DNA of 64,000 bases from Macrostomum hystrix (lineage: Eukaryota > Animalia > Platyhelminthes), in NCBI GenBank assembly GCA_950097015.1, contig CATNEN010000034.1:6200001-6264000 (forward strand), written 5' to 3'. The notes beneath the pieces are model-generated. The model was not told where the DNA came from, ran no database searches, and was given only the letters and a program-made list of their open reading frames with translations. Every line of letters starts with the position of its first letter. The stretch's first letter is position 1. The position numbers and the translations under genes are program-made. This document shows positions 2,558 through 30,141 of this stretch, one piece after another.

Positions 2558-5500
2558 TTAAGTTATCGTTCTCAATACGTAATCATTGCCACACGACGCA
2601 TTGGTGTAGTCTTCAACCAACTGGATGTTGTCCTGCAGGCCTCCTAAAATGCGGCAATAAGAATTTTCCCATTTTTATTTGCAGATTATTCCAATTACGA
2701 ACTGTTAGCCTCGAAGACAGGAAACAAAATCTGACTCGCTACTGTGAGTAGCGCGGTAGGCAAATAAAAAAATTAAAATAACTTACCGCCGTCACTGCGA
2801 CGAGCTGCTTGACTGCCAGCGTTGGTCGCCACAGCGCCGGCGCTGGGTGTGAGTCTAGTCTCCTCAGTCAAGGGCTCGCTAGCCGGGCTTCCCAACTGGG
2901 GAATTAGCAGCTGATTGCCGGGCTAAAATATTCGACACAACAGCAGAAAAATAGAAATATAGTTCGTAATTTGTTAACAGTAGGAATTGCCCCCTTAAAA
3001 CTATTTGTGCTGCACCCGAACGGAGCAACGCAAGCACAAGAAACTCAAGAACACGGGCCAACTTCTTTTGCGCATCTTCTGAAACAACAATCAAGTCCCC
3101 AGCTCTTCAGATCGTCGAGTTATTCAACGGTTCTGGCAGAAGGTCAGATTTTTCCCATCCAGTGTATTTTATACACTCCTACACGAATTAGCACTGCAAG
3201 CGCCTCGGCACGGATGACGCGCTGATAAAGTTTGAATGCCGAGGAGGTTGCACTGAGGCGCAGTGCAAATTCGTGTATAGGGGTGTATGAAATGCACTGA
3301 TTACTATAGGAAAAATCCGACCTTGGGCCAGAATCGATGAATATCTCGACGGTTAGAACTATATTTAACAACTTTCAACTCCCAATATCAACTTAAGAAA
3401 CGATAAAAGAAAGTTTTTTTAACTGCCTAATTAACAGAATGGCATTTCAACGATCTTGTGTCCACCGCTAGCTTATTAGTCAACTTAGTTTTCGTACAGG
3501 ACAACTAAATCGCAAACAACAAACCTCTTCCGGGTAGCGATCGCGCGCCGCCTTTTGCACTTTCGGATCTCGCCTATGTCGTTTGCGATAACAAAAGAAA
3601 AGAAAAGAAATCAGTACGCTAAGCAGCACAACGACTGTTACGATTAGTACTGTCGTTGGCCATGTAGCAGGCAGTTGGATGTTGTTATCAAATAGCACGC
3701 GCTGTCCTGACAGAGCTTCTAAAATCACAGTTTGGCCATTGAGTCTCTTCGCTACATCATCGGGCAGTTCGCATAGAAACTGCCTGGGCAAGTCCTGCAC
3801 GCATTTGGCTAGGCTAGAATTCGCACTTGAATCGTAACGCAGGCGATATTCTTGAACATAAGCCTCGCCTTGACAGCTAGTCTCTACCAGCCTAATCCTC
3901 CTGTGATTGATAATCTTCCAAGAGATTCTCGGATTTGCAACACTGCCGGTGAATCCGTCAGCATCAACTGCATAGCAACGACAAGCTGGCCAGGTCTTGT
4001 TAGACAACTGACCAATCAGGTATCGGATATTGTGACCTGGGGATATTGTTACAGAGTCACCCAACGTCAGATTTAACGCCCGGACTCGCTTGCAATCGGC
4101 CAGTTTTGGATCGTCCGACACTGCAGCCAGCTCGCAGGCGGAGACAAAATATGGGCGAGCGCCTGCTGTCCGGGTCTGGCCGGCCCAAAGCAGAGACAGC
4201 CGCCTGCCACCCGGCCTGTCAGCAATGTCGAACAGCTCGTCAACATAGCCTTCTTGTAGCGGCTCTGGCGGGCAGTCGGGCAGCCAGGTCACGTTGACGG
4301 CGCCAGCCGACGGTCCAGCGCCGGCTTCGGTGGCAGCAGCAACTTTTAGTTGATGTCCGCTGTATGAATGTTTCCAGGCAAAAAATCTATCGTCATCGAC
4401 ATCATTAACGTCGACTGCGACAGAGCGAATCGGCGAGACGCCGTCGTTAATTTGAAAGTTTCGAATTCGGCCATTGCGACAGGCTGGGCTGGGAAGCACG
4501 GCGCCAACTGTGCCCTCCCGGGGCATCGCCAGTACCAGAGCCGGGGCCTCGCACGGAGGCAATTCTAGCGCGCTGAATGCCGCACTGACCGGATCGGACT
4601 CGTGGCCAGAAAAATAGCGCGGCCTACAGCTGACACTCATATTGTACTGCTGGCCAGCCAGTAGAATTGCTTCCGTGTTAGCAAAGTCTACTCGAGTATT
4701 GTTAGTAGTAACGCTGGCTACAATCTGACTGAACCGCACAATATTCACTCTGTAGGTGAAGTTCTGGTCTATATTTGGCACAGTTGCTGCTCGGAATTGG
4801 ACGCTTAAAAGTTTAGTGCCAATGGGCTGCTGAGTAGTATAGAATATTTTCAGGTCGACAATTGGCAACGGCTTTTCTAGAATAATGCGATGGTGAATGC
4901 ATTTAAGAGAATACATTTAGAGTTGATATTTATACCAATTTGACAATCGTTTTTTTATTTTTGAAGTGTGTTGAAGTGTACGCTAGCTTCTAGAGTCTAT
5001 GCTCCGTAATTTTTTTAAGCAATATATTTTCTATGGCAGCTGTGTATGGCAAAGCTTGGCAGAGAAGCTAGCGTACACTTCTATGCTCAATAACTCGCAT
5101 CCGGAGCAAAGTTTTGTGGAATAAACTTACAAATGTTTTCTGTAGACCAGTTAAATTACTGGGCTATGAGCCTAACTGTTCACTTTGGGACACCCGTTAT
5201 ATAAAATAATAATATTTGACTTAATTATTTATGGAGAGAATGAAGAGAAAATGCGAGTGTCCGAGTAGTTTTCTGTTTCATAAGCTCAACTGCATTTTAG
5301 GCACAAAGAATGCTTCCCAGAATGGATTAAGCTACAAGGAAAGAAACTAATATCAAACGATAGACCTTTGATCAGACTAAAGTCACCAAATTTTTGCGGA
5401 AACCAACCTTCTTAACATTTTTCTAAGAAACGTAGTTTTTTTAATTCTACTCTTAGCTGTTGTTGTGACAAAAAAAACCACGACAGATATGCATATCTGT

Positions 5501-20349: not shown

Positions 20350-23300
20350 ATGGACGTGGCAGGAACAGGAGACAGTGGAACAGCTTCCGACACGACCCGT
20401 CAGTCAGCTCAGGTGCCGAAGACTCCCGCTATTCGACCGGTGCTTCATCGACGCTCAACAACGCTCCCCAATGCGGCAGCCAGCTCTGACAACCAAGACG
20501 CAAATCCGCCAGCCATTCGAAGCTACCAAAGTGTCATGCTTGGCAACCTGGCAGACCTACCGCCTGTGAACAGCCGAGTGGTTCGCATCTTCCTTTCTTC
20601 GACATTCTCCGACATGTCGGCCGAGCGCAACTACCTCATGCAGCACGCGAATCCGCGACTGAAAAAATTCTGTCGCGACGCATTCGGCTTGGAGTTCCAA
20701 ACCATCGACATGCGCTGGGGAGTCGGAGACGACGTTCAACTGGACCATCGCGGACCGGAAATGTGCTACCAGGAGATTGAGAATGCTCTCGCCTCATCAG
20801 CCGGGCCTTACTTCATCTGCCTACTGGGACAAAGGTACGGAAATCAACCTCCAGCTGCCCTAGTAGAGGAAGAAGTATTCGAAAAGATTGTCTCAGCACT
20901 AACGGAAGAAGGCTGCGATGTATCGTGTATTCTCGAATGGTACTCCAAGGACACAAACAACGTTCCACCAGTACGAGTGCTGAAACCAATTGCGACTCCG
21001 GCAGAATCGGTGAGTTCAGGAGTTCAGCTGCTGCCTAATTGATTTTCGAGGGCACAATTTCCAGTATTGTTGTTGTTTTCTGGCAAATTTCTCATGGAAA
21101 AAACGCGATATGGTTTTCAAAGTCAAATCGACAATATTGCCTGACACATATTTCTATCTACTATACTACAACTTTTTAGGTTGAGAAAACCTTTCTAAAC
21201 GAGGCCTACAATCGCTGGACGTCTGTTCGTGACAACCTTGTCGACTTAATGAAGAGAGGTGCCGAGCTCTGCTCCAAGAAAGGACAGATATCCCAAGTTG
21301 ATGTGAAGAAGTTTTCCGTTTCAGTCACGGAGATGGAGGTCATGAAGGGCATTTTGCTGATGCCGGAGCAAAAGCTGTGGCAAGCTCTCGCCTTTGTCAG
21401 GGAGTTTTCCGATCTAGATAATCGGCCAGATTTCAGCAGCGGAAAATTGTTCAAATTCCTCGATTTAAAGGACACCGTAGGCAAAGATGGCAGGCCAACG
21501 AAGATTCTCAATGAGACTGTTTACAAGATGGTGAAAGACCTGAATCAGCTTGTTATTAGACGAATGCCCTCACAAAATGCGTTTAAGTACTCGTTAAAGT
21601 GGACTGATGACAATAGGGGTGTCACTCGAGACTCGCAGAAAATCTACCTGCAGAGTTTTGTAAATGATTACTGCAACAGTGTACAGCGCCTAGTCAACGA
21701 ATCTGTGCGTGAGAGCATGCGCCTTCGAGCGGATGATCTGTACACTGAAGTGCTGCAGCACTCCACTGCTTGCGTCGAATACGCAAATAAGTTTCAGGGC
21801 CGTAAGGACATCATCGACAAGGTGAAGGCTTACGTGCAAGTGAGCAATACCACTGAGCCTCTGGTGGTGCATGGCGACTCTGGCAGTGGCAAGACCTCTC
21901 TTCTGGGCAGGGCCGCCAGTCTTGTGCGAAGCTGGCTGCCAGAGCCCGGTGCACCAGAAGCGATCGTGCTGCTGCGGTTCCTCGGCACCAGTCCTGGTAC
22001 GTCGAGCATTCGACAGACTCTCAAGTACTTGTGCCGTCAGCTGGCCCTGTTTGGCAATGATGACGACAAGGAAAAGTGCGAGTCACTCGACGACTTCAAA
22101 GAGATCTTGAACACCTTCTACTCAATGCTGGATCGCATTGGCCAGTTCAGGCGAATCTTGGTGTTCCTTGACAGTGTGGATCAACTGGACAGCTCAGATG
22201 GTGCCTACCACCTGACGTGGGTGCGGACACCTCTTCCTGACAATGTGAAGATGATTGTGTCCACTCTGCCAAACATGTTCGACCTGCTGAAGACATTTAA
22301 AGGGAAGCTTCCCAACCCGAACATCTACGTCGAGGTGACTCCGTTGGAGACGAGTCTGTGCACGAGCATTTTGTCAGCTCTGCTCAGCGAGCAAGGCCGC
22401 ACGCTGAATCGACAACAATGGGCTCTGATTGAGCAGGCCTTCTCAAAGTGCTCGCTCCCAATCTACGTGCACCTGTTGTACCACGAGGTTCTGAGATGGC
22501 GCTCGTATCAGCAGGTGGACGAGTCCTGCTTGCGCTACACCGTTCGCCAGGCCATCTTTCAGTTGTTCGAGAACCTCGAGCTCAAGCACGGCAAATTGTT
22601 TGTAAGTGTATTTTTTTGTTTTCTTTTGTATTGGAAAACTTGGCAGTTGCTCAAAATCTAAATTGCTCTCGTTTTGCATCGCAGACCTCGCACGCTCTGG
22701 CATTCATCACTGCCTCGAGAAACGGACTGTCGGAATCGGAGTTGGAGGACTTGCTCAGTCTGGATGACACTGTGCTCATCGATGTGTTCCAGCATCACCT
22801 GCCGCCCTTCATCCGCATTCCACCGATCTGCTGGGCTCGACTGCGACACGACATTGGATCATATCTAGTGGAGAGGGAGGCAGACAATATCCGGGTGGTG
22901 TTCTGGTATCACCGACAGTTCATCGAGGTCGCTCAGGAGTACTTCTTGTCTGATGAGAATACCAGGCGCGACATTCACTCAATCATGGCTGACTACTTCC
23001 TGGGACTGTGGAGTGGCCGCAAGAAGAAGTTTGTGTATCCAGCCTATCTAAGAAAGAAGCTTGTGAGTGGACAGCAGTCGAGTACTGCTTCGATGTGAAA
23101 CGCTTTTATGTGTAGCTCTTGGTACTGACGTATGGCCGTGTTGAAATAATGTGAGCCCTTGATCCTGACGTGCAATTTCAGAATCTTCCCGAGTACTCGA
23201 TGGAGGACCGAGCTGTTCCGGAACAACCATTCGTGCTCCGCAAAGATGAAGACGGCACCGCACAGTACAACTTGCGCAAACTGAACGAGCTGCCTTGGCA

Positions 23301-26300
23301 TCTCATCAAGTCTGAGCGAGTGAACGAGTTCTACGACTACATCGTGTTCGACTACGACTTCATGTTCAACAAGCTCAAGGGCACCTCGCGCTACCTGCTA
23401 CTGAGGGACCTTGACCTTCCTCAGAAGCTCGGAGTTGAGTGCATCTCCGAGGCAGAGCTCGTGTACAATGCGATCAGGCTCTCTGCACAGAGCCTCGTGT
23501 ACGACCCTTCAAACTTGAGCGTCGATCTCATTGGCCGGCTCATCATGTACGAGAAGGACTGTCCCCGAGTGAAGCTGCTGCTCAACCAGTGCAGACAATC
23601 GAAGCAAGCGCTCAGCAACTGCTGCCTCATTCCCAAAGTCCAGTGCTTTGACTCCGGCTCGGGAGTGCTCTACTCCAGCTTCGATCTGGGCCTGGGAATA
23701 GGCATAATGAAGCCCGATGGCCAGATAGTAACATTCTCTTTAGTTGACAACGATGTCACACACTACGACATTGAAGGCAATGAGATCAAGCGCCACTCTA
23801 GCGATTACAATTTAGCTGTCAGTTTAAAGTTTCTTACCGAAGACAGTGTTCCGGAGGACGGTATCGTCACAGTACTTGCCAGGCGCAACAAAAATATGGA
23901 GGCCATACAGGACGATGATGAGCCCGAACAGCAGCAGCACAGAGGCCTCGAGGATCCGCATGATGTTGTGCGCTTGGACTTGAATAGTGGAAAAGCAACC
24001 AGGCTGATGTCACTGGCTCGGCCGCTCAATCTCTCCATTAACAACGTTCGCGTTGTTAAAGACAAATACATTCTTCTTGGCAACGGGGCAGAGAAAGCTA
24101 TGCTGCTGTCGATAAAGGACAGGAAGCTTTGCCCGCTTCACGAAGGTCAGCTGAGCGTGTGCTCAGCACTCGGTAGTCAGTACCTGGACTCTGATCAGGA
24201 CTGTATTTGCATTGGCATTTCGGTTTCCGATCAAAAGTCAACGCTTTTGTTTTTTAAGAACCTTGGAACCGGAGAAGCCATCAGTGGAGACTTGCTGGAG
24301 ATATTCCAGTCGGTGGAAAAGACCAAGCTTCAAGAGATTTGGTCTTTATACGAACCAAGTGCCAACGCACTTGAACCAACACAGGATGCAAGAGCCGGGA
24401 CTGCCGATATTCTGCACAGTGCGAGCCAAATTTTGATGCCTTCCTGTTGTATTGTTCAGGATAGAAGCATTTTGGCATTCTTAGTCAAATTAAAAGATGC
24501 AACTGTCGAGGACACCCTCTTTGCCACGTTCTCAACCAAAAACTCTCTGCGACCAACGAGCATTTTGCAGCTCGGCTTGAAGTTTAGGACGGAAGCGGCG
24601 CAGTGTGTTCGCAGCGCCTCTTTGAACTACGTGGCATTTTTCTTAAAGACATATACAGACCAGCCACATCACTCTGCCATTTATAGAGGCTTTATTTATC
24701 ACGTCAAACAGAGGCGCGCCAACGCCCTCTTTTTGTCTACAGGGCAGGAGAAATTTATGAATGCCCTAAGCAAGTTTGGCGAGTCAGTACGCGCTCGATT
24801 CACAGAAAATGAGCAGCTCTTAATAACAAATGGTAACCAAACACTCATGCTGGTGTGGTCCGTGCGAACTGGGCAGCTTCTGCACGGAATCAAAACGGGC
24901 TCCGCTGAGAGCATCCTCTGCGGCCAGCCCAAGGGCACTGACTTCATGACCATCTGCTACTTGCCAGACAGATCAGGTGATACAACTGACAGTTTAACAA
25001 TCTCCATCAAAGTTTACAATTTGCGAGTATTCAGTCAGGAGAAACAGCTTGTGGAGGAGGCGTCAATGTCTCTTCCGCTGTTCACTAAGTCTGCCGGGTT
25101 CTGCTGCGCTAAATTTCCCGGCGAGCCTCAGAAAATCGAACTTTTACACTCAGTAGACAGTGCTCAATTGAGCTTAGACCCGAGCTGCTCGGAAGTTAGT
25201 CGGATGGTGGATGCAAAGCCGGTTGACAATGTGCGAATTCTTGTCAACGATCCGCGAGTCGAGTTGGTCAGAAAGTGCGACGGTCGCGGCACTGCGAGGC
25301 TGGTGCTGCCGAATTGTCAATTGGAGCCAGTTCTCGCACTGTTCAACTCCAATCCAAGCGACCTTGAGCAATCAAACAATGTTTTGGAATACTTTGGGTT
25401 CACTCTTGAGACCATTGTTGAGCAGGAAGGCGCAGCAGAAGTCCGCCATGTCACTTCCAAGGCGATGATGGAATACAACAATTTTCTATTTCCTGTCGGA
25501 CCCTTGCTGGAATGTGTTTCTGTCGAGCCGCTGATTTTCATTGACGAAGCGCGGAAGATCTTAATCCAGCTTAGATTCCCTTCCAATGTACTCATTTACA
25601 AGTTTATTATTTCTATTGTTAGCTTGAAAACAATGCGCGGCAACCAAAAAGAATTTCTGTTTGTCGACGAAATCGAAGAAAACCCGTTCTCGGATGGGTT
25701 CGTCAGCATTTTTAGCAAGTCGATTTTCAAAGACCAGACGCTTGGACAAGACCTAACAGATGAGGAGAAGCAGCAAGCTATTCAGAAATTTCTTTTAACT
25801 TACGCGACGTCCATAAAAAACAAGTGCATCGCATTTGATTTCTCCCCGAGGTGCAGCGCTCTGAATCTCGCCCTAGCGTACGATGGACAGCCGGGAAAGA
25901 AGATTCGCACCGGAGTTAGGGACCCTCCGATATGGCTCGGCAGCGTTATTCGAATCTACTACTGCGAGTCGGCTTCCGAGCCGCGTTTTAGTCGCCAGGA
26001 CGGCAAGCTCTTTGACATGGGCCTATCGGTGGCATTCCTTAACGACAACCAGCACCTCATTAACTACAAGCTCCAAGTTGTGGACTATATGCGAGGCGAT
26101 GTGATTCGCAGCATTAGGCCAGGCGAGGAATTGTACTTCATTCAAATGCAGGTTAGCTAGTCATTTACTATCCTCGAAGGTTCTTTAGCCTGAAGGCAAT
26201 AAAAAGTACGAGCTATGAGAATTTCTTATGGTTTTTACTAATTCTTCTGCTCTAGGTTACAAGTGACGGCAGTCTTGTAGTTGGCCAGCGGTTCTTCCCC

Positions 26301-28208
26301 TCGTACAAGATTGACATTGCTGCGTTTGACGACCCATCTGCTAGAAGAGAGGACACGTTTGCCACTGATCCTCCGCGCTGTCTACAGGTGACGACTTTTA
26401 TTGCTTTGTTGCTTTTTGTTGTCTTATCTAATTGCTACCAAGTCAATCTTCCAGTCTGTAGTCTGTCAATCCTCCAGTCTGTAGTTTGTCAATCCTCTAT
26501 TCCAGGGGTCGGCAAACTTATTAGCTAGCGGGCCAAAATAGAACCTAAAAGACGACAGCGGGCCGCATTGACTGTAGAAATATATCAGAGATAGGGGAGA
26601 GATGAGACAGGGGAGCGATGAGACACGGGTGAGATGAGACGCGGGAGAGATGAGACACTGGAGAGATAAGACACAAGAGAGATGAGACAGAGAAGAGATG
26701 ACGGGGAGATAAGACACGGGAGAGATGAGACAGAGAAGAGATGACGGGGAGACGAGACAGAGAAGAGATGACCGGGAGATAAGGCTGAGAAGAGATGACG
26801 GGGAAATGAGACAGAGGAGAGATTAGACAGGGGAGAGATGAGACACGGGAGAGATAAGACAGAGAAGAGATGACGGGGAGATGAGGCAGAGAAGAGATTA
26901 GACAGGGGAGAGATGAGACACAGGAGAGATGAGACAGAGAAGAGACGAGACACGGGAGAGGTGAGACAAAGGAGAGATAAGACACGGGAGAGATGAAACA
27001 GAGAAGAGACGAGACACGGGAGAGGTGAGACAGAGGAGAGATAAGACACGGGAGAGATGAAACAAAGAAGAGACGAGACACGGGAGAGGTGAGACAAAGG
27101 AGAGATAAGACACGGGAGGGATGAAACAGTATACCATAGGTGTCGGAAGGGGCAACGGGCCGGATTTGAGAGCTTTCAGAGCCGCATCTGGCCCGCGGGC
27201 CAGAGTTTGCCGACCTCTGCTCTAGTTTGTAGTCTGTCAATCGTCCAGTCTGTAGGGTGTCAATCCTCCAGTCTGTAGTCTGTCAATCTTCCAGTCTATA
27301 GTCTGTCAATCTTCCAGTCTGTAGTCTGTCAATCTTCCAGTCTGTAGTCTGTCAATCTTCCAGTCTATAGGGTGTCAATCCTCCAGTCTGTAGTCTGTCA
27401 ATCTTCCAGTCTGTAGTCTGTCAATCCTCCAGTCTGTAGTCTGTCAATCCTCCAGTCTGTTGGGTGTCAATCTTCCAGTCTATATTCTGTCAATCTTCCA
27501 GTCTATATTCTGTCAATCTTCCAGTCTGTAGCCTGTCAATCTTCCAGTCTGTAGTCTGTCAATCCTCCAGTCTGTAGTCTGTCAATCTTCCAGTCTATAG
27601 GGTGTCAATCCTCCAGTCTGTAGTCTGTCAATTTTCCAGTCTATAGTAAGTGTGTGGCTGTTACCCAACTACCCGTTGATTGCCTCAGGTGTACCGCATC
27701 AGTGACGGCACCCGCCTAGCAAATTATCTGTTTGAGACCAATCCTGTTGGCTTCTGTCTATTCGGCCAGCACGACCGCGACCTCCTGGTGCTGATGCAAA
27801 ACTCGCCTCTACAGCTATTTAGCCTCGTTGAACTGCCAGAAGAACAGGGTGATGTGAGGATGGCGGCTGATACTCCAAAAGATTCCATGGTGGCAACGAC
27901 AGACTCGGACACTGGGCAAAACAGCGAAGATTCTTATCAAACTAAACTGGACTGCCTTCGTAAGTTCAACTGACGTCTCCCAATCCGGCACAATGTTCCC
28001 ATGGTACCCCCGATAACCACAGTCAGACTTTGCGTAGCTTAATCAAGACATTACCCGAAACCACCTGCCAGGCGTTGTCCTTGGCCTAGCCTTCGTGGAG
28101 CTGGCTGTCGCTCGACCGGCTGACCCGATCGTCTTTCTGGCCGAGGCATTGCTTCGCCTGGGGCCACACGGCGCACCTCCAGCTGGAGCAAATGGACTGA
28201 AGAACTAG
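20350..28208 (+). CDS. DUF4062-NACHT STAND NTPase (NWD1/NWD2-type) with divergent C-terminal region and terminal Dpy-30-like motif, ~1989 aa
   Basis: Exons 20350-21009, 21180-22601, 22685-23062, 23182-26151, 26256-26387, 27689-27959, 28072-28208. The first five introns are phase 0 and the last is phase 1. Motifs: [12 protein letters not shown]...ERNYL...DMRWGV (DUF4062), Walker A GDSGSGKT, Walker [35 protein letters not shown] (NWD-type). If the last intron is retained the frame stops at 27973. Start codon uncertain. Confidence 0.85.
26445..27648. repeat. Minisatellite, 23-bp unit GTCTGTCAATCTTCCAGTCTGTA, interrupted by a MITE
   Basis: Units lie on both sides of the 26503-27219 insertion in intron 5 of the NACHT gene. 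Confidence 0.9.
26503..27219. mobile_element. Non-autonomous hAT (Charlie-like) element carrying an internal GA-rich tandem array
   Basis: TIRs CAGGGGTCGGCAAACT (26503-26518) and AGTTTGCCGACCTCTG (27204-27219) match 15/16; 8-bp flanks CTCTATTC / CTCTAGTT match 6/8; internal GAGATGAGACACGGGA-type repeats at ~26587-27125. Confidence 0.85.
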
Positions 28209-28300
28209 AAAGACCCGCAGCCAGCGAGGAGGCCGCGGAATAGAGCTCAGGGACCTTGGTGCGAGAAGCAAACGGGTTTACGGCTCTGCCACTCAGCCCA
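28209..28300 (-). mobile_element. SINE family B, internally deleted copy in the NACHT gene 3' UTR
   Basis: GAGTGGCAGAG...AAGGTCCCTGAGCTCTATTCC (head as at 9870-9950) joined to CCTCCTCGCTGGCTGCGGGTCT (as at 31337-31358). Confidence 0.6.
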
Positions 28301-28635
28301 ATGATATACACTTAATGCGCGTGTTTAATTTTTCTAACCAATTTTTTAGATTTGTTATTATAAAGTTGCAATATCCTCATTTTTATTCAGATGATTTTAA
28401 TTCGAGCCTTTTTATTTTACATAGTAAATCATCACAAAGAGATAATATTTTAAACAAGTGACTTAAAAAATAACACTTACTTTTAAATAAAGACGGTCAA
28501 TGCTGGACTTGCTTGTCCGGTTTTACTTGACTGTGAATACAGCAAAAGCTTTACATGTGTATTACTATTAGTAGCACACGGAGAATCAGAAATATATTTA
28601 TCAACTTTCCCATAAATTCCATTACGCTCGTACAT

Positions 28636-28777
28636 ATTCCTCACTAGATTTCTCCGATTCCTCACTAGATTTCTCCGAATTCTCACTAGATTTCTCCGAT
28701 TCCTCACTAGATTTCTCCGAATTCTCACTAGATTTCTCCGATTCCTCACTAGATTTCTCCGATTTCTCACTAGATTT
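28636..28777. repeat. Minisatellite, 21-bp unit ATTCCTCACTAGATTTCTCCG, ~6.5 copies
   Basis: Tandem array. Confidence 0.9.
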
Positions 28778-29235
28778 TATTAAATTGGACTAATCGCAAT
28801 CGGTTCCATATCAGTCTGATGAACATAGTCGAAATGAAGTACGTGTCGATACTATTTTGGTCGATAAACTTTTGTCCAGACTAGCATACTCAATGCATAC
28901 TCAATGCAGTACTTACTCCCATGAAAACAATGCGTGTGTGGCCTGATCTAAAATCAATAACATGCAGTCTTACGAAACAGCATTAGCTCTGAATAAGCTT
29001 TAAACGTGCAATTTCATGCCGTCTCATTGGGCCATGTCCAAGATCGATTTCGGCGTTTAGCCCGAAAGTCTGATTCACAAGGACTTTTAAATGTCCTATA
29101 AATAACATTAGCGCAAATTTTGATAGCTATTATTGATGGCACGTTGCACTTAAAACGTAAAATTATAAATCTATGTGTAGCCCACCTTCGAATCCCCGAA
29201 ATGTTTTTCATACATTTCTCCCATTCCCTCGATTC

Positions 29236-30141
29236 CTCACATTATCTAGATTTATCCCATTTCATACTCGTAGTTAAATGATATATCCTAGATGTATCCC
29301 ATTTCCTAGATTTATCCCATTTCCTAGATTTGTCCCATTTCCTAGATTTATCCCATTTCCTAGATTTATCTCATTTCCTAGATTTATCACATTTCCTAGA
29401 TTTATCCCATTTCCTAGATTTATCCCATTTCCTAGATTTATCATATTTCCTAGATTTGTCCCATTTCCTAGATTTATCCCATTTCCTAGATTTATCCCAT
29501 TTCCTAGATTTATCCCATTTCCTAGATTCATCCCATTTCCTAGATTTATCCCATTTCCTAGATTTATCCCATTTCCTAGATGTATCCCATTTCCTAGATT
29601 TATCCCATTTCCTAGATTTGTCCCATTTCCTAGATTTATCCCATTTCCTAGATTTATCTCATTTCCTAGATTTATCACATTTCCTAGATTTGTCCCATTT
29701 CCTAGATTTATCCCATTTCCTAGATTTGTCCCGTTTCCTAGATTTATCTCATTTCCTAGATTTATCCCATTTCCTAGATTTATCACATTTCCTAGATTTA
29801 TCCCATTTCCTAGATTTATCCCATTTCCTAGATTTATCCCATTTCCTAGATTTATCACATTTCCTAGATTTATCTCATTTCCTAGATTTATCACATTTCC
29901 TAGATTTATCCCATTTCCTAGATTTGTCCCGTTTCCTAGATTTATCCCATTTCCTAGATTTATCCCATTTCCTAGATTTATCCCATTTCCTAGATTTATC
30001 CCATTTCCTAGATTTGTCCCATTTCCTAGATTTATCCCATTTCCTAGATTTATCTCATTTCCTAGATTTATCACATTTCCTAGATTTATCCCATTTCCTA
30101 GATTTATCCCATTTCCTATATTTATCATATTTCCTAGATTT
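29236..30141. repeat. Minisatellite, 18-bp unit ATTTCCTAGATTTATCCC, ~50 copies
   Basis: Tandem array; produces 6-aa-periodic ORFs on both strands. Confidence 0.95.

Follow-up and report, generated by a model that had tools for sequence, protein, structure and literature searches.

A Dpy-30 motif divided by the last intron at the C-terminal end of an NWD1-like STAND NTPase gene of the flatworm Macrostomum hystrix

The stretch of DNA analysed here (the window) comprises 64,000 nucleotides of the flatworm Macrostomum hystrix (GenBank assembly GCA_950097015.1, contig CATNEN010000034.1, positions 6,200,001 to 6,264,000 of the forward strand) and carries a gene for an NWD1-like STAND nucleoside triphosphatase (NTPase), the transcript of which is spliced from position 27959 to position 28072 of the window into a short terminal exon that completes a Dpy-30 motif. 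We read this exon as the true 3′ end of the gene, so that the protein would have the domain order DUF4062-NACHT-HTH_NWD1-propeller-linker-Dpy-30, and its tail as most likely a dimerization or docking module; we put the probability of this reading at about 0.8. NACHT/STAND proteins work by regulated oligomerization, and the solved Dpy-30 domains dimerize and dock on amphipathic helices. The splicing of the last exon, the presence of the motif, the conservation of both the intron and the motif, and the taxonomic spread of the tail are documented in the following paragraphs.

The penultimate exon (exon 6) ends at 27959 (...GACTGCCTTC) and is directly followed by the donor GTAAGT at 27960. A branch-like CTTAAT occupies 28038-28043; the last letter of the acceptor CTGCCAG is 28071, and 28072 is the first position of exon 7. 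The intron is in phase 1 and divides an arginine codon (C/GC); without splicing, the frame of exon 6 would read ...LDCLRKFN and then a stop codon. An earlier note on this DNA, made from the letters alone, had already pointed to the donor at 27960, the CTTAAT element, the acceptor at 28070-28071, the matching phases and the unspliced LRKFN tail, and all of these are borne out in the sequence. Transcript evidence was taken from the contigs of four public runs (X1-X4), all from one study, which were placed on positions 24001-29900. The joint 27959 to 28072, which the same note had proposed as a check, is present in one contig from each of the four runs, skipping 112 nucleotides with GT..AG borders and with 201-255 letters on its shorter side; an end near 27973 is not seen in these contigs. 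The contig with this joint spans 25347-26149, 26254-26384, 27686-27959 and 28072-28406/28439, and its two other joints (26149 to 26254, cut shifted by +2, and 26384 to 27686, cut shifted by +3) likewise have GT..AG borders and occur in the four runs. Application of the two cut shifts gave the exon limits 26151/26256 and 26387/27689, which were matched against the sequence.

No contig of the four runs lies inside the 112-nucleotide intron, none extends past 28439 and no depth is recorded past 28531; about half of the sampled words from 27300-28500 are contained in the runs. We take the runs as RNA-derived because their contigs skip three canonical introns and amount to 42-48 million contig letters per run, compared with a genome of 220 Mb. 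The contigs display the spliced form only and not the retained-intron form, rare variants being dropped from contigs, and they lend no support to the isoform switch that the earlier note had suggested as a possible effect of intron retention. A second in-frame acceptor is found at 28048 (AATCAAG/ACATTA), 24 nucleotides upstream of the one in use; it would add eight residues before the motif and is used by none of the contigs of the four runs. The last exon is confirmed as real and as spliced from 27959 to 28072, and the junction is beyond chance because the position and phase of the intron recur in nine paralogs and because exon 7 passes the gathering score of the Pfam Dpy-30 model.

Exon 7 alone scores 22.8 bits against this model (PF05186; gathering cut-off 22 bits) with an E value of 7.7e-5 over profile positions 17-39 of 42, so that the Dpy-30 motif proposed in the earlier note for the spliced C-terminus is recovered; RIIa is the second and weaker Pfam match. 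The two-helix layout with its RP.(D/N)P turn is present, helix one being contributed by exon 6 (KLDCL) and the turn and helix two by exon 7.

The most weighty argument is that the same arrangement recurs in the genome. A six-frame scan of the 220-Mb assembly with PF05186 gave 17 matches, 11 of which begin at profile position 10-16, and nine of these 11 have a paralog 1-2 kb upstream of them on their strand. The NACHT exon and exon 4 served as queries to locate the paralogs, and 13 loci (L001-L013) were examined. An exon 6 homolog is present at 11 paralog loci, and at each of L001-L009 (L001-L003 being the three C41 loci) it is followed by an exon 7 homolog. All nine possess a phase-1 donor of the GTAAGT/GTGAGT type (GTGCGT in L003) after '(D/E)YL..(L/V)' and a YAG acceptor before 'xVL..(G/A)(L/M)A.VA..RP.DPI(E/D)(F/Y)LA.(W/C/H)LL', and the intron that splits the motif is identical in column and phase in the window gene and the nine paralogs. 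Dpy-30 is matched by all ten terminal exons (best E value 2.2e-12), and their alignment (A1) contains eight invariant columns (L3, A11, R14, P15, D17, P18, L22 and L26). Judged from these sequences, the Dpy-30 tail is an inherited trait of a flatworm gene family with at least ten genes in this genome, and not an accident of one locus.

Relatives in other species were sought with exon 4, for which an exhaustive HMMER search returned 344 proteins. Among the best 150 of these 344, the family hidden Markov model (HMM) together with a regular expression detected the tail in six, namely A0A1I8HEY0 (P0003), A0A1I8G4P0 (P0007), A0A1I8HSJ9 (P0009) and PAA68612.1 (P0011) of Macrostomum lignano and the trematode proteins CAL8080693.1 of Calicophoron daubneyi (P0005) and CAI2730300.1 of Schistosoma spindale (P0006). 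P0003, P0007 and P0009 contain NACHT, HTH_NWD1 and Dpy-30 at 29-36 bits, with DUF4062 in addition in P0007 and P0009. The M. lignano predictions have the architecture of the window gene and a Pfam-significant Dpy-30 end, and a further one, A0A1I8JGR1 (P0152), aligns to all seven exons in the window; they are named merely 'NACHT domain-containing protein' or 'hypothetical'. The two trematode predictions resemble the window gene in HTH_NWD1, in an AAA_16-type NTPase match and in a C-terminal 'DYLE..GL...RP.DPI..(L/I)A', but they differ from it in that NACHT is under the cut-off in P0006 and not detected in P0005, and in that Dpy-30, although the top Pfam match of both tails, stays below the cut-off of 22 bits (15.3 bits in P0005 and 14.7 bits in P0006). 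A third trematode protein, KAF6774349.1 of Paragonimus kellicotti (P0012), ends with 'LLGYLEATGLCEFL...', having just the first half of the motif, and its model seems to run on into the intron. Since the motif is split by a short intron just ahead of a tiny last exon, a gene model can overlook the tail, as seems to have happened in this Paragonimus protein.

The last 110 residues of 106 relatives (at least 700 amino acids long, from the best 150 of 344) were scanned as well. Dpy-30 was found in four of these C-termini, all from M. lignano, Beta-prop_NWD2_C in 13 and WD40-type models in many. The C-termini of the non-flatworm relatives in this set are beta-propeller and not Dpy-30, in keeping with the expectation of the earlier note that NWD relatives normally end in propellers. 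Within the limits of the best 150 of the 344 relatives and of existing gene models, the tail is a flatworm feature. A word-index protein search with exon 4 yielded two M. lignano proteins only, the full-length relatives being above its length limit. P0152 is orthologous not to the window gene (34% identity) but to a paralog at 7.01 Mb of C34 (56-63% identity in the propeller), and no database protein nearer to the window gene was found. A literature search found no paper linking NACHT or NWD1 with a Dpy-30 domain, none combining NWD1 with flatworms and none under the M. lignano gene identifiers. The earlier suggestion that the architecture is undescribed therefore stands as far as papers are concerned, but the architecture is, by sequence comparison, already present in unnamed public predictions from M. 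lignano and trematodes and in ten or more genes of this genome, and is not unique to the window gene.

NWD1 and NWD2 (QUI-1 in Caenorhabditis elegans) share with the window protein the N-terminal DUF4062, the NACHT domain, the PF25469 winged helix and probably a C-terminal beta-propeller region. In contrast to theirs, the likely propeller in the window gives no Pfam WD40 match and is fast-evolving (paralogs are 32-34% identical there and 83-86% in the N-terminal halves), and the protein runs on past the propeller into a linker and the Dpy-30 motif. When a profile of the ten exons was compared with solved chains, the best matches were two proteins of the radial spokes, DYDC2 (51 bits) and DYDC1, followed by DPY30 (34 bits) and then RSP2, AK7 and NME5; the P0003 tail aligns with human DPY30 over both helices. 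The motif 'YL...VL..GLA.VA..RP.DPIEFLA.WLL' is common to the family and to DYDC1/DYDC2, DPY30, NME5, AK7 and RSP2. AK7 and NME5 also resemble the window protein in carrying it at the extreme C-terminus of a larger enzyme, whereas the carrier here is a STAND NTPase of about 2000 amino acids and not a small adaptor or a nucleotide kinase. The motif of the flatworm family is, moreover, cut by a family-specific phase-1 intron, while four of the five strongest canonical Dpy-30 matches in the genome are each one open frame extending from profile position 1-3 to 41-42. There is a precedent for tethering a large enzyme through a Dpy-30 tail: the mammalian kinases AK7 and AK9 have C-terminal DPY30 domains, and the pairing of these domains and their docking on CFAP91 anchor both kinases in the axoneme (PMC11779644).

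The capacity of such a tail to form dimers was modelled with the M. lignano relative P0003. A two-copy model of P0003 residues 1846-1901 scored 0.36, compared with 0.02 for the best control, with a contact agreement among the homodimer runs of at least 79% and a partner pLDDT (predicted local distance difference test) of 67; among solved structures, 21 of 30 homodimers and none of 23 monomers reach the mark for a homodimer. The 21 predicted interface residues were mapped by eye, exon by exon, on the window copy, in which 12 are identical; among the nine others five are hydrophobic-for-hydrophobic replacements and one is Q to E, the chief exception being a change from Tyr to Lys. The model shows a likeness of the predicted P0003 dimer to known dimers and is no proof for the window copy. 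By analogy with the solved Dpy-30 domains we infer dimerization, docking and any partner of the tail: it would most likely form a four-helix-bundle dimer on a flexible tether. This dimer would join two STAND chains, or one chain and another Dpy-30 protein, and an amphipathic helix of some scaffold protein would fit into its groove.

Several points weigh against our reading. The transcript support comes from one study, the library type of the four runs is unrecorded and minor isoforms cannot show in assembled contigs. The complex was modelled with P0003 and not with the tail encoded in the window, and its passing may be a recall of solved DPY30 dimers. The window copy is itself the lowest-scoring and most divergent of the ten family exons; at the site of the family's (D/E)YL it reads TKL, so that the conserved Tyr is replaced, and a phmmer comparison of its exon 7 with solved chains gave at best an E value of about 0.2, to NME5 tails. 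Two paralogs (L012 and L013) have an exon 6 homolog, but the family HMM detected no Dpy-30 exon in six frames within 3.6 kb and 2.8 kb downstream of them, respectively, so that the tail is dispensable for some members of the family. The low score, the missing Tyr, the weak matches to solved chains and the loss of the exon in two paralogs are also what would be expected if the window copy were a decaying remnant, still spliced and translated, which has lost dimerization and docking even though the tails of its paralogs work. We consider this very unlikely, given that the window copy keeps all eight invariant columns of the family, an open frame, consensus splice sites and a spliced transcript in four runs, and that the 12 identical interface positions are accompanied by mostly conservative changes at the remainder. 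One could also propose that the junction arose by faulty assembly or read-through and that the Dpy-30 exon is a small gene of its own further downstream; this proposal can draw on the use of assembled contigs from a single study of unrecorded library type. It is nevertheless extremely improbable: the joint is canonical with ample sequence on both sides in four runs, the contigs splice two upstream introns as well, the reading frame runs through the joint, the exon pair is repeated in nine paralogs and in protein models from M. lignano and trematodes, and the frame of exon 7 has neither a start codon of its own nor the first half of the motif.

A different partner for the tail has also to be considered. 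Macrostomids have a multiciliated epidermis, and the best solved matches of the family profile are the radial-spoke proteins DYDC2 and DYDC1, ahead of DPY30, while those of the window exon are the tails of NME5. The tail might, to judge by these resemblances, pair mainly with other Dpy-30 proteins (paralog tails, or proteins of the DYDC or NME5 type) and dock the NTPase on an amphipathic helix of RSPH3, CFAP91 or a similar scaffold protein of the ciliary radial spokes, so that the whole family would be anchored in cilia; the C-terminal DPY30 domains of AK7 and AK9 do form heterodimers that dock on radial spoke 3 (PMC11779644). Against this stand the extent of the similarity, which is 25 residues of a short motif, the activity of Dpy-30 domains outside cilia, for example in COMPASS, and the fact that the homodimer was the sole pairing tried in silico. 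We regard a primarily ciliary heterotypic role as possible but unlikely, and retain the more general reading of the tail as a dimerization or docking module at the true end of the gene.

The predicted gene consists of seven exons on the plus strand encoding about 1989 amino acids, with every intron except the last in phase 0. Its transcript support covers the part from 24001 onward, and exons 1-4 were placed by tblastn of M. lignano proteins and an in-phase scan for splice sites. Exon 1 (20350-21009), which begins at the first ATG of its open frame as a putative start codon, encodes DUF4062 (PF13271, 37.9 bits; cut-off 24.7); it is 65% identical to P0152 over 20353-21009 by tblastn and is followed by a phase-0 GTGAGT donor at 21010. 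Exon 2 (21180-22601) encodes the NACHT/AAA_16 NTPase (PF05729, 37.2 bits, cut-off 26.7; PF13191, 45 bits) with the P-loop GDSGSGKT in its translation, and exon 3 (22685-23062) the NWD1-like winged helix (PF25469 HTH_NWD1, 34.9 bits; cut-off 27); the tblastn identities to P0152 are 77% and 97.6%, respectively. Exon 4 (23182-26151), overlaid by contigs over 24001-26149, comprises a conserved post-HTH region of about 250 amino acids and then the fast-evolving region that resembles a WD40-like beta-propeller. Exon 5 (26256-26387) has 44 codons and is delimited by contig joints in four runs. It is separated by intron 5 (26388-27688, 1301 nucleotides) from exon 6 (27689-27959), which is supported by contigs and by the homologous exon at the paralog loci, and which encodes the last part of the propeller, then an acidic linker of low complexity and the first Dpy-30 helix (SYQTKLDCL). 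Intron 6 (27960-28071) is the phase-1 intron within the motif. The coding part of exon 7 (28072-28208) specifies 44 residues, namely the second half of the motif and a short tail, with the TAG stop codon at 28206-28208, and the 3′ untranslated region extends over 28209-28439, the contigs ending at 28406-28439.

The DUF4062, NACHT and Dpy-30 parts of the architecture put forward in the earlier note are found by Pfam, as is HTH_NWD1, but the propeller is indicated just by a model of low confidence, and Pfam has no match for the 990 amino acids of exon 4 (no WD40 and no Beta-prop) nor for exon 6. Residues 250-996 of exon 4 were modelled with AlphaFold2 on an alignment of 14 rows; the model is poor (mean pLDDT 56), beta-rich at residues 12-375 and 635-735 and disordered at 380-588. 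Almost all of the PDB matches listed for it by Foldseek are WD40-type or other beta-propellers at E values of about 1e-8, for instance Gemin5, Utp21, G-beta and RACK1, with TM-scores by query of just 0.12-0.27. From this model the region is likely, but not firmly shown, to be a propeller of a degenerate WD40-like kind. The acidic low-complexity stretch ahead of the motif (ELPEEQGD...SEDS), in a linker of roughly 35 residues, would fit a flexible tether.

Intron 5 is full of tandem repeats, as detected by Tandem Repeats Finder. A GA-rich array with a period of 16/32 nucleotides and about 35 copies occupies 26588-27129 and is flanked by arrays of 23 nucleotides at 26442-26497 and 27224-27647. 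The summed contig depth over these arrays reaches about 5e4 in all four runs and many contigs continue into unrelated sequence, which points to a genome-wide, transcribed satellite-like repeat.

The paralogs provide some further observations. The window gene and the paralog at G000:C34:7009697-7015929, 0.8 Mb away, are 83% identical in the NACHT exon and 86% identical in the first 249 amino acids of exon 4, but just 32-34% identical in the propeller and tail, the break lying at about 23930 (20350-23930 versus 23930-28208). This mosaic identity, together with the orthology of P0152 to that paralog only, suggests gene conversion of the N-terminal half of the window gene, or swapping of the sensor half as in NLR families. 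L012 (G000:C34:7026500-7030600, minus strand, with G000:C34:7034343-7035725) is the inverted neighbour of L007. It is an inverted duplicate of the paralog at 7.01 Mb of C34 with a TAG within its NACHT exon, and is probably a decaying copy. In L013, a natural stop directly follows the propeller. The M. lignano protein P0001, which has no Dpy-30 motif at its end, was considered as a truncated model, and this was rejected since L013 stops naturally at the same place; P0001 and L013 probably form a branch without the tail.

L010 and L011 were rejected as members of the family: they show the same 5′ boundary within the motif but lack the penultimate exon of the family. L011 (G000:C34:1763300-1767200, minus strand) encodes a guanylate cyclase (HNOBA 32 bits, Guanylate_cyc 121 bits), and a Dpy-30 exon lies about 1 kb downstream on the same strand (family HMM 39.9 bits, ...ALSIGVAEVAMRRPADPIEYLALWL); this may be a cyclase with a Dpy-30 tail. 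L010 (G000:C38:20164000-20167900, plus strand) has a half-motif Dpy-30 exon at 3146-3358 that scores 44 bits with the family HMM; there is no NWD-type exon upstream of it, and the upstream open reading frames have no Pfam match.

For a NACHT switch, a constitutive dimerization or docking module attached to the distal end of the sensor domain would alter either its pre-organization or its cellular location. One specific form of this idea is that flatworms evolved a family of STAND NTPases, sensor-like and variable in their propellers, which a DYDC-type Dpy-30 tail tethers to an amphipathic scaffold helix, possibly in the radial spokes of motile cilia, or combines as paralogs in mixed dimers. 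We consider this proposal quite unlikely as it stands; if true, it would be a way of pre-assembling or localizing a NACHT switch that is undescribed among NLR and NWD proteins. Macrostomids have many copies with fast-diverging propellers, and relatives exist in parasitic trematodes; given this wide distribution among flatworms, the family could be a lineage-specific system for surveillance or for cilia in a phylum to which major parasites belong.

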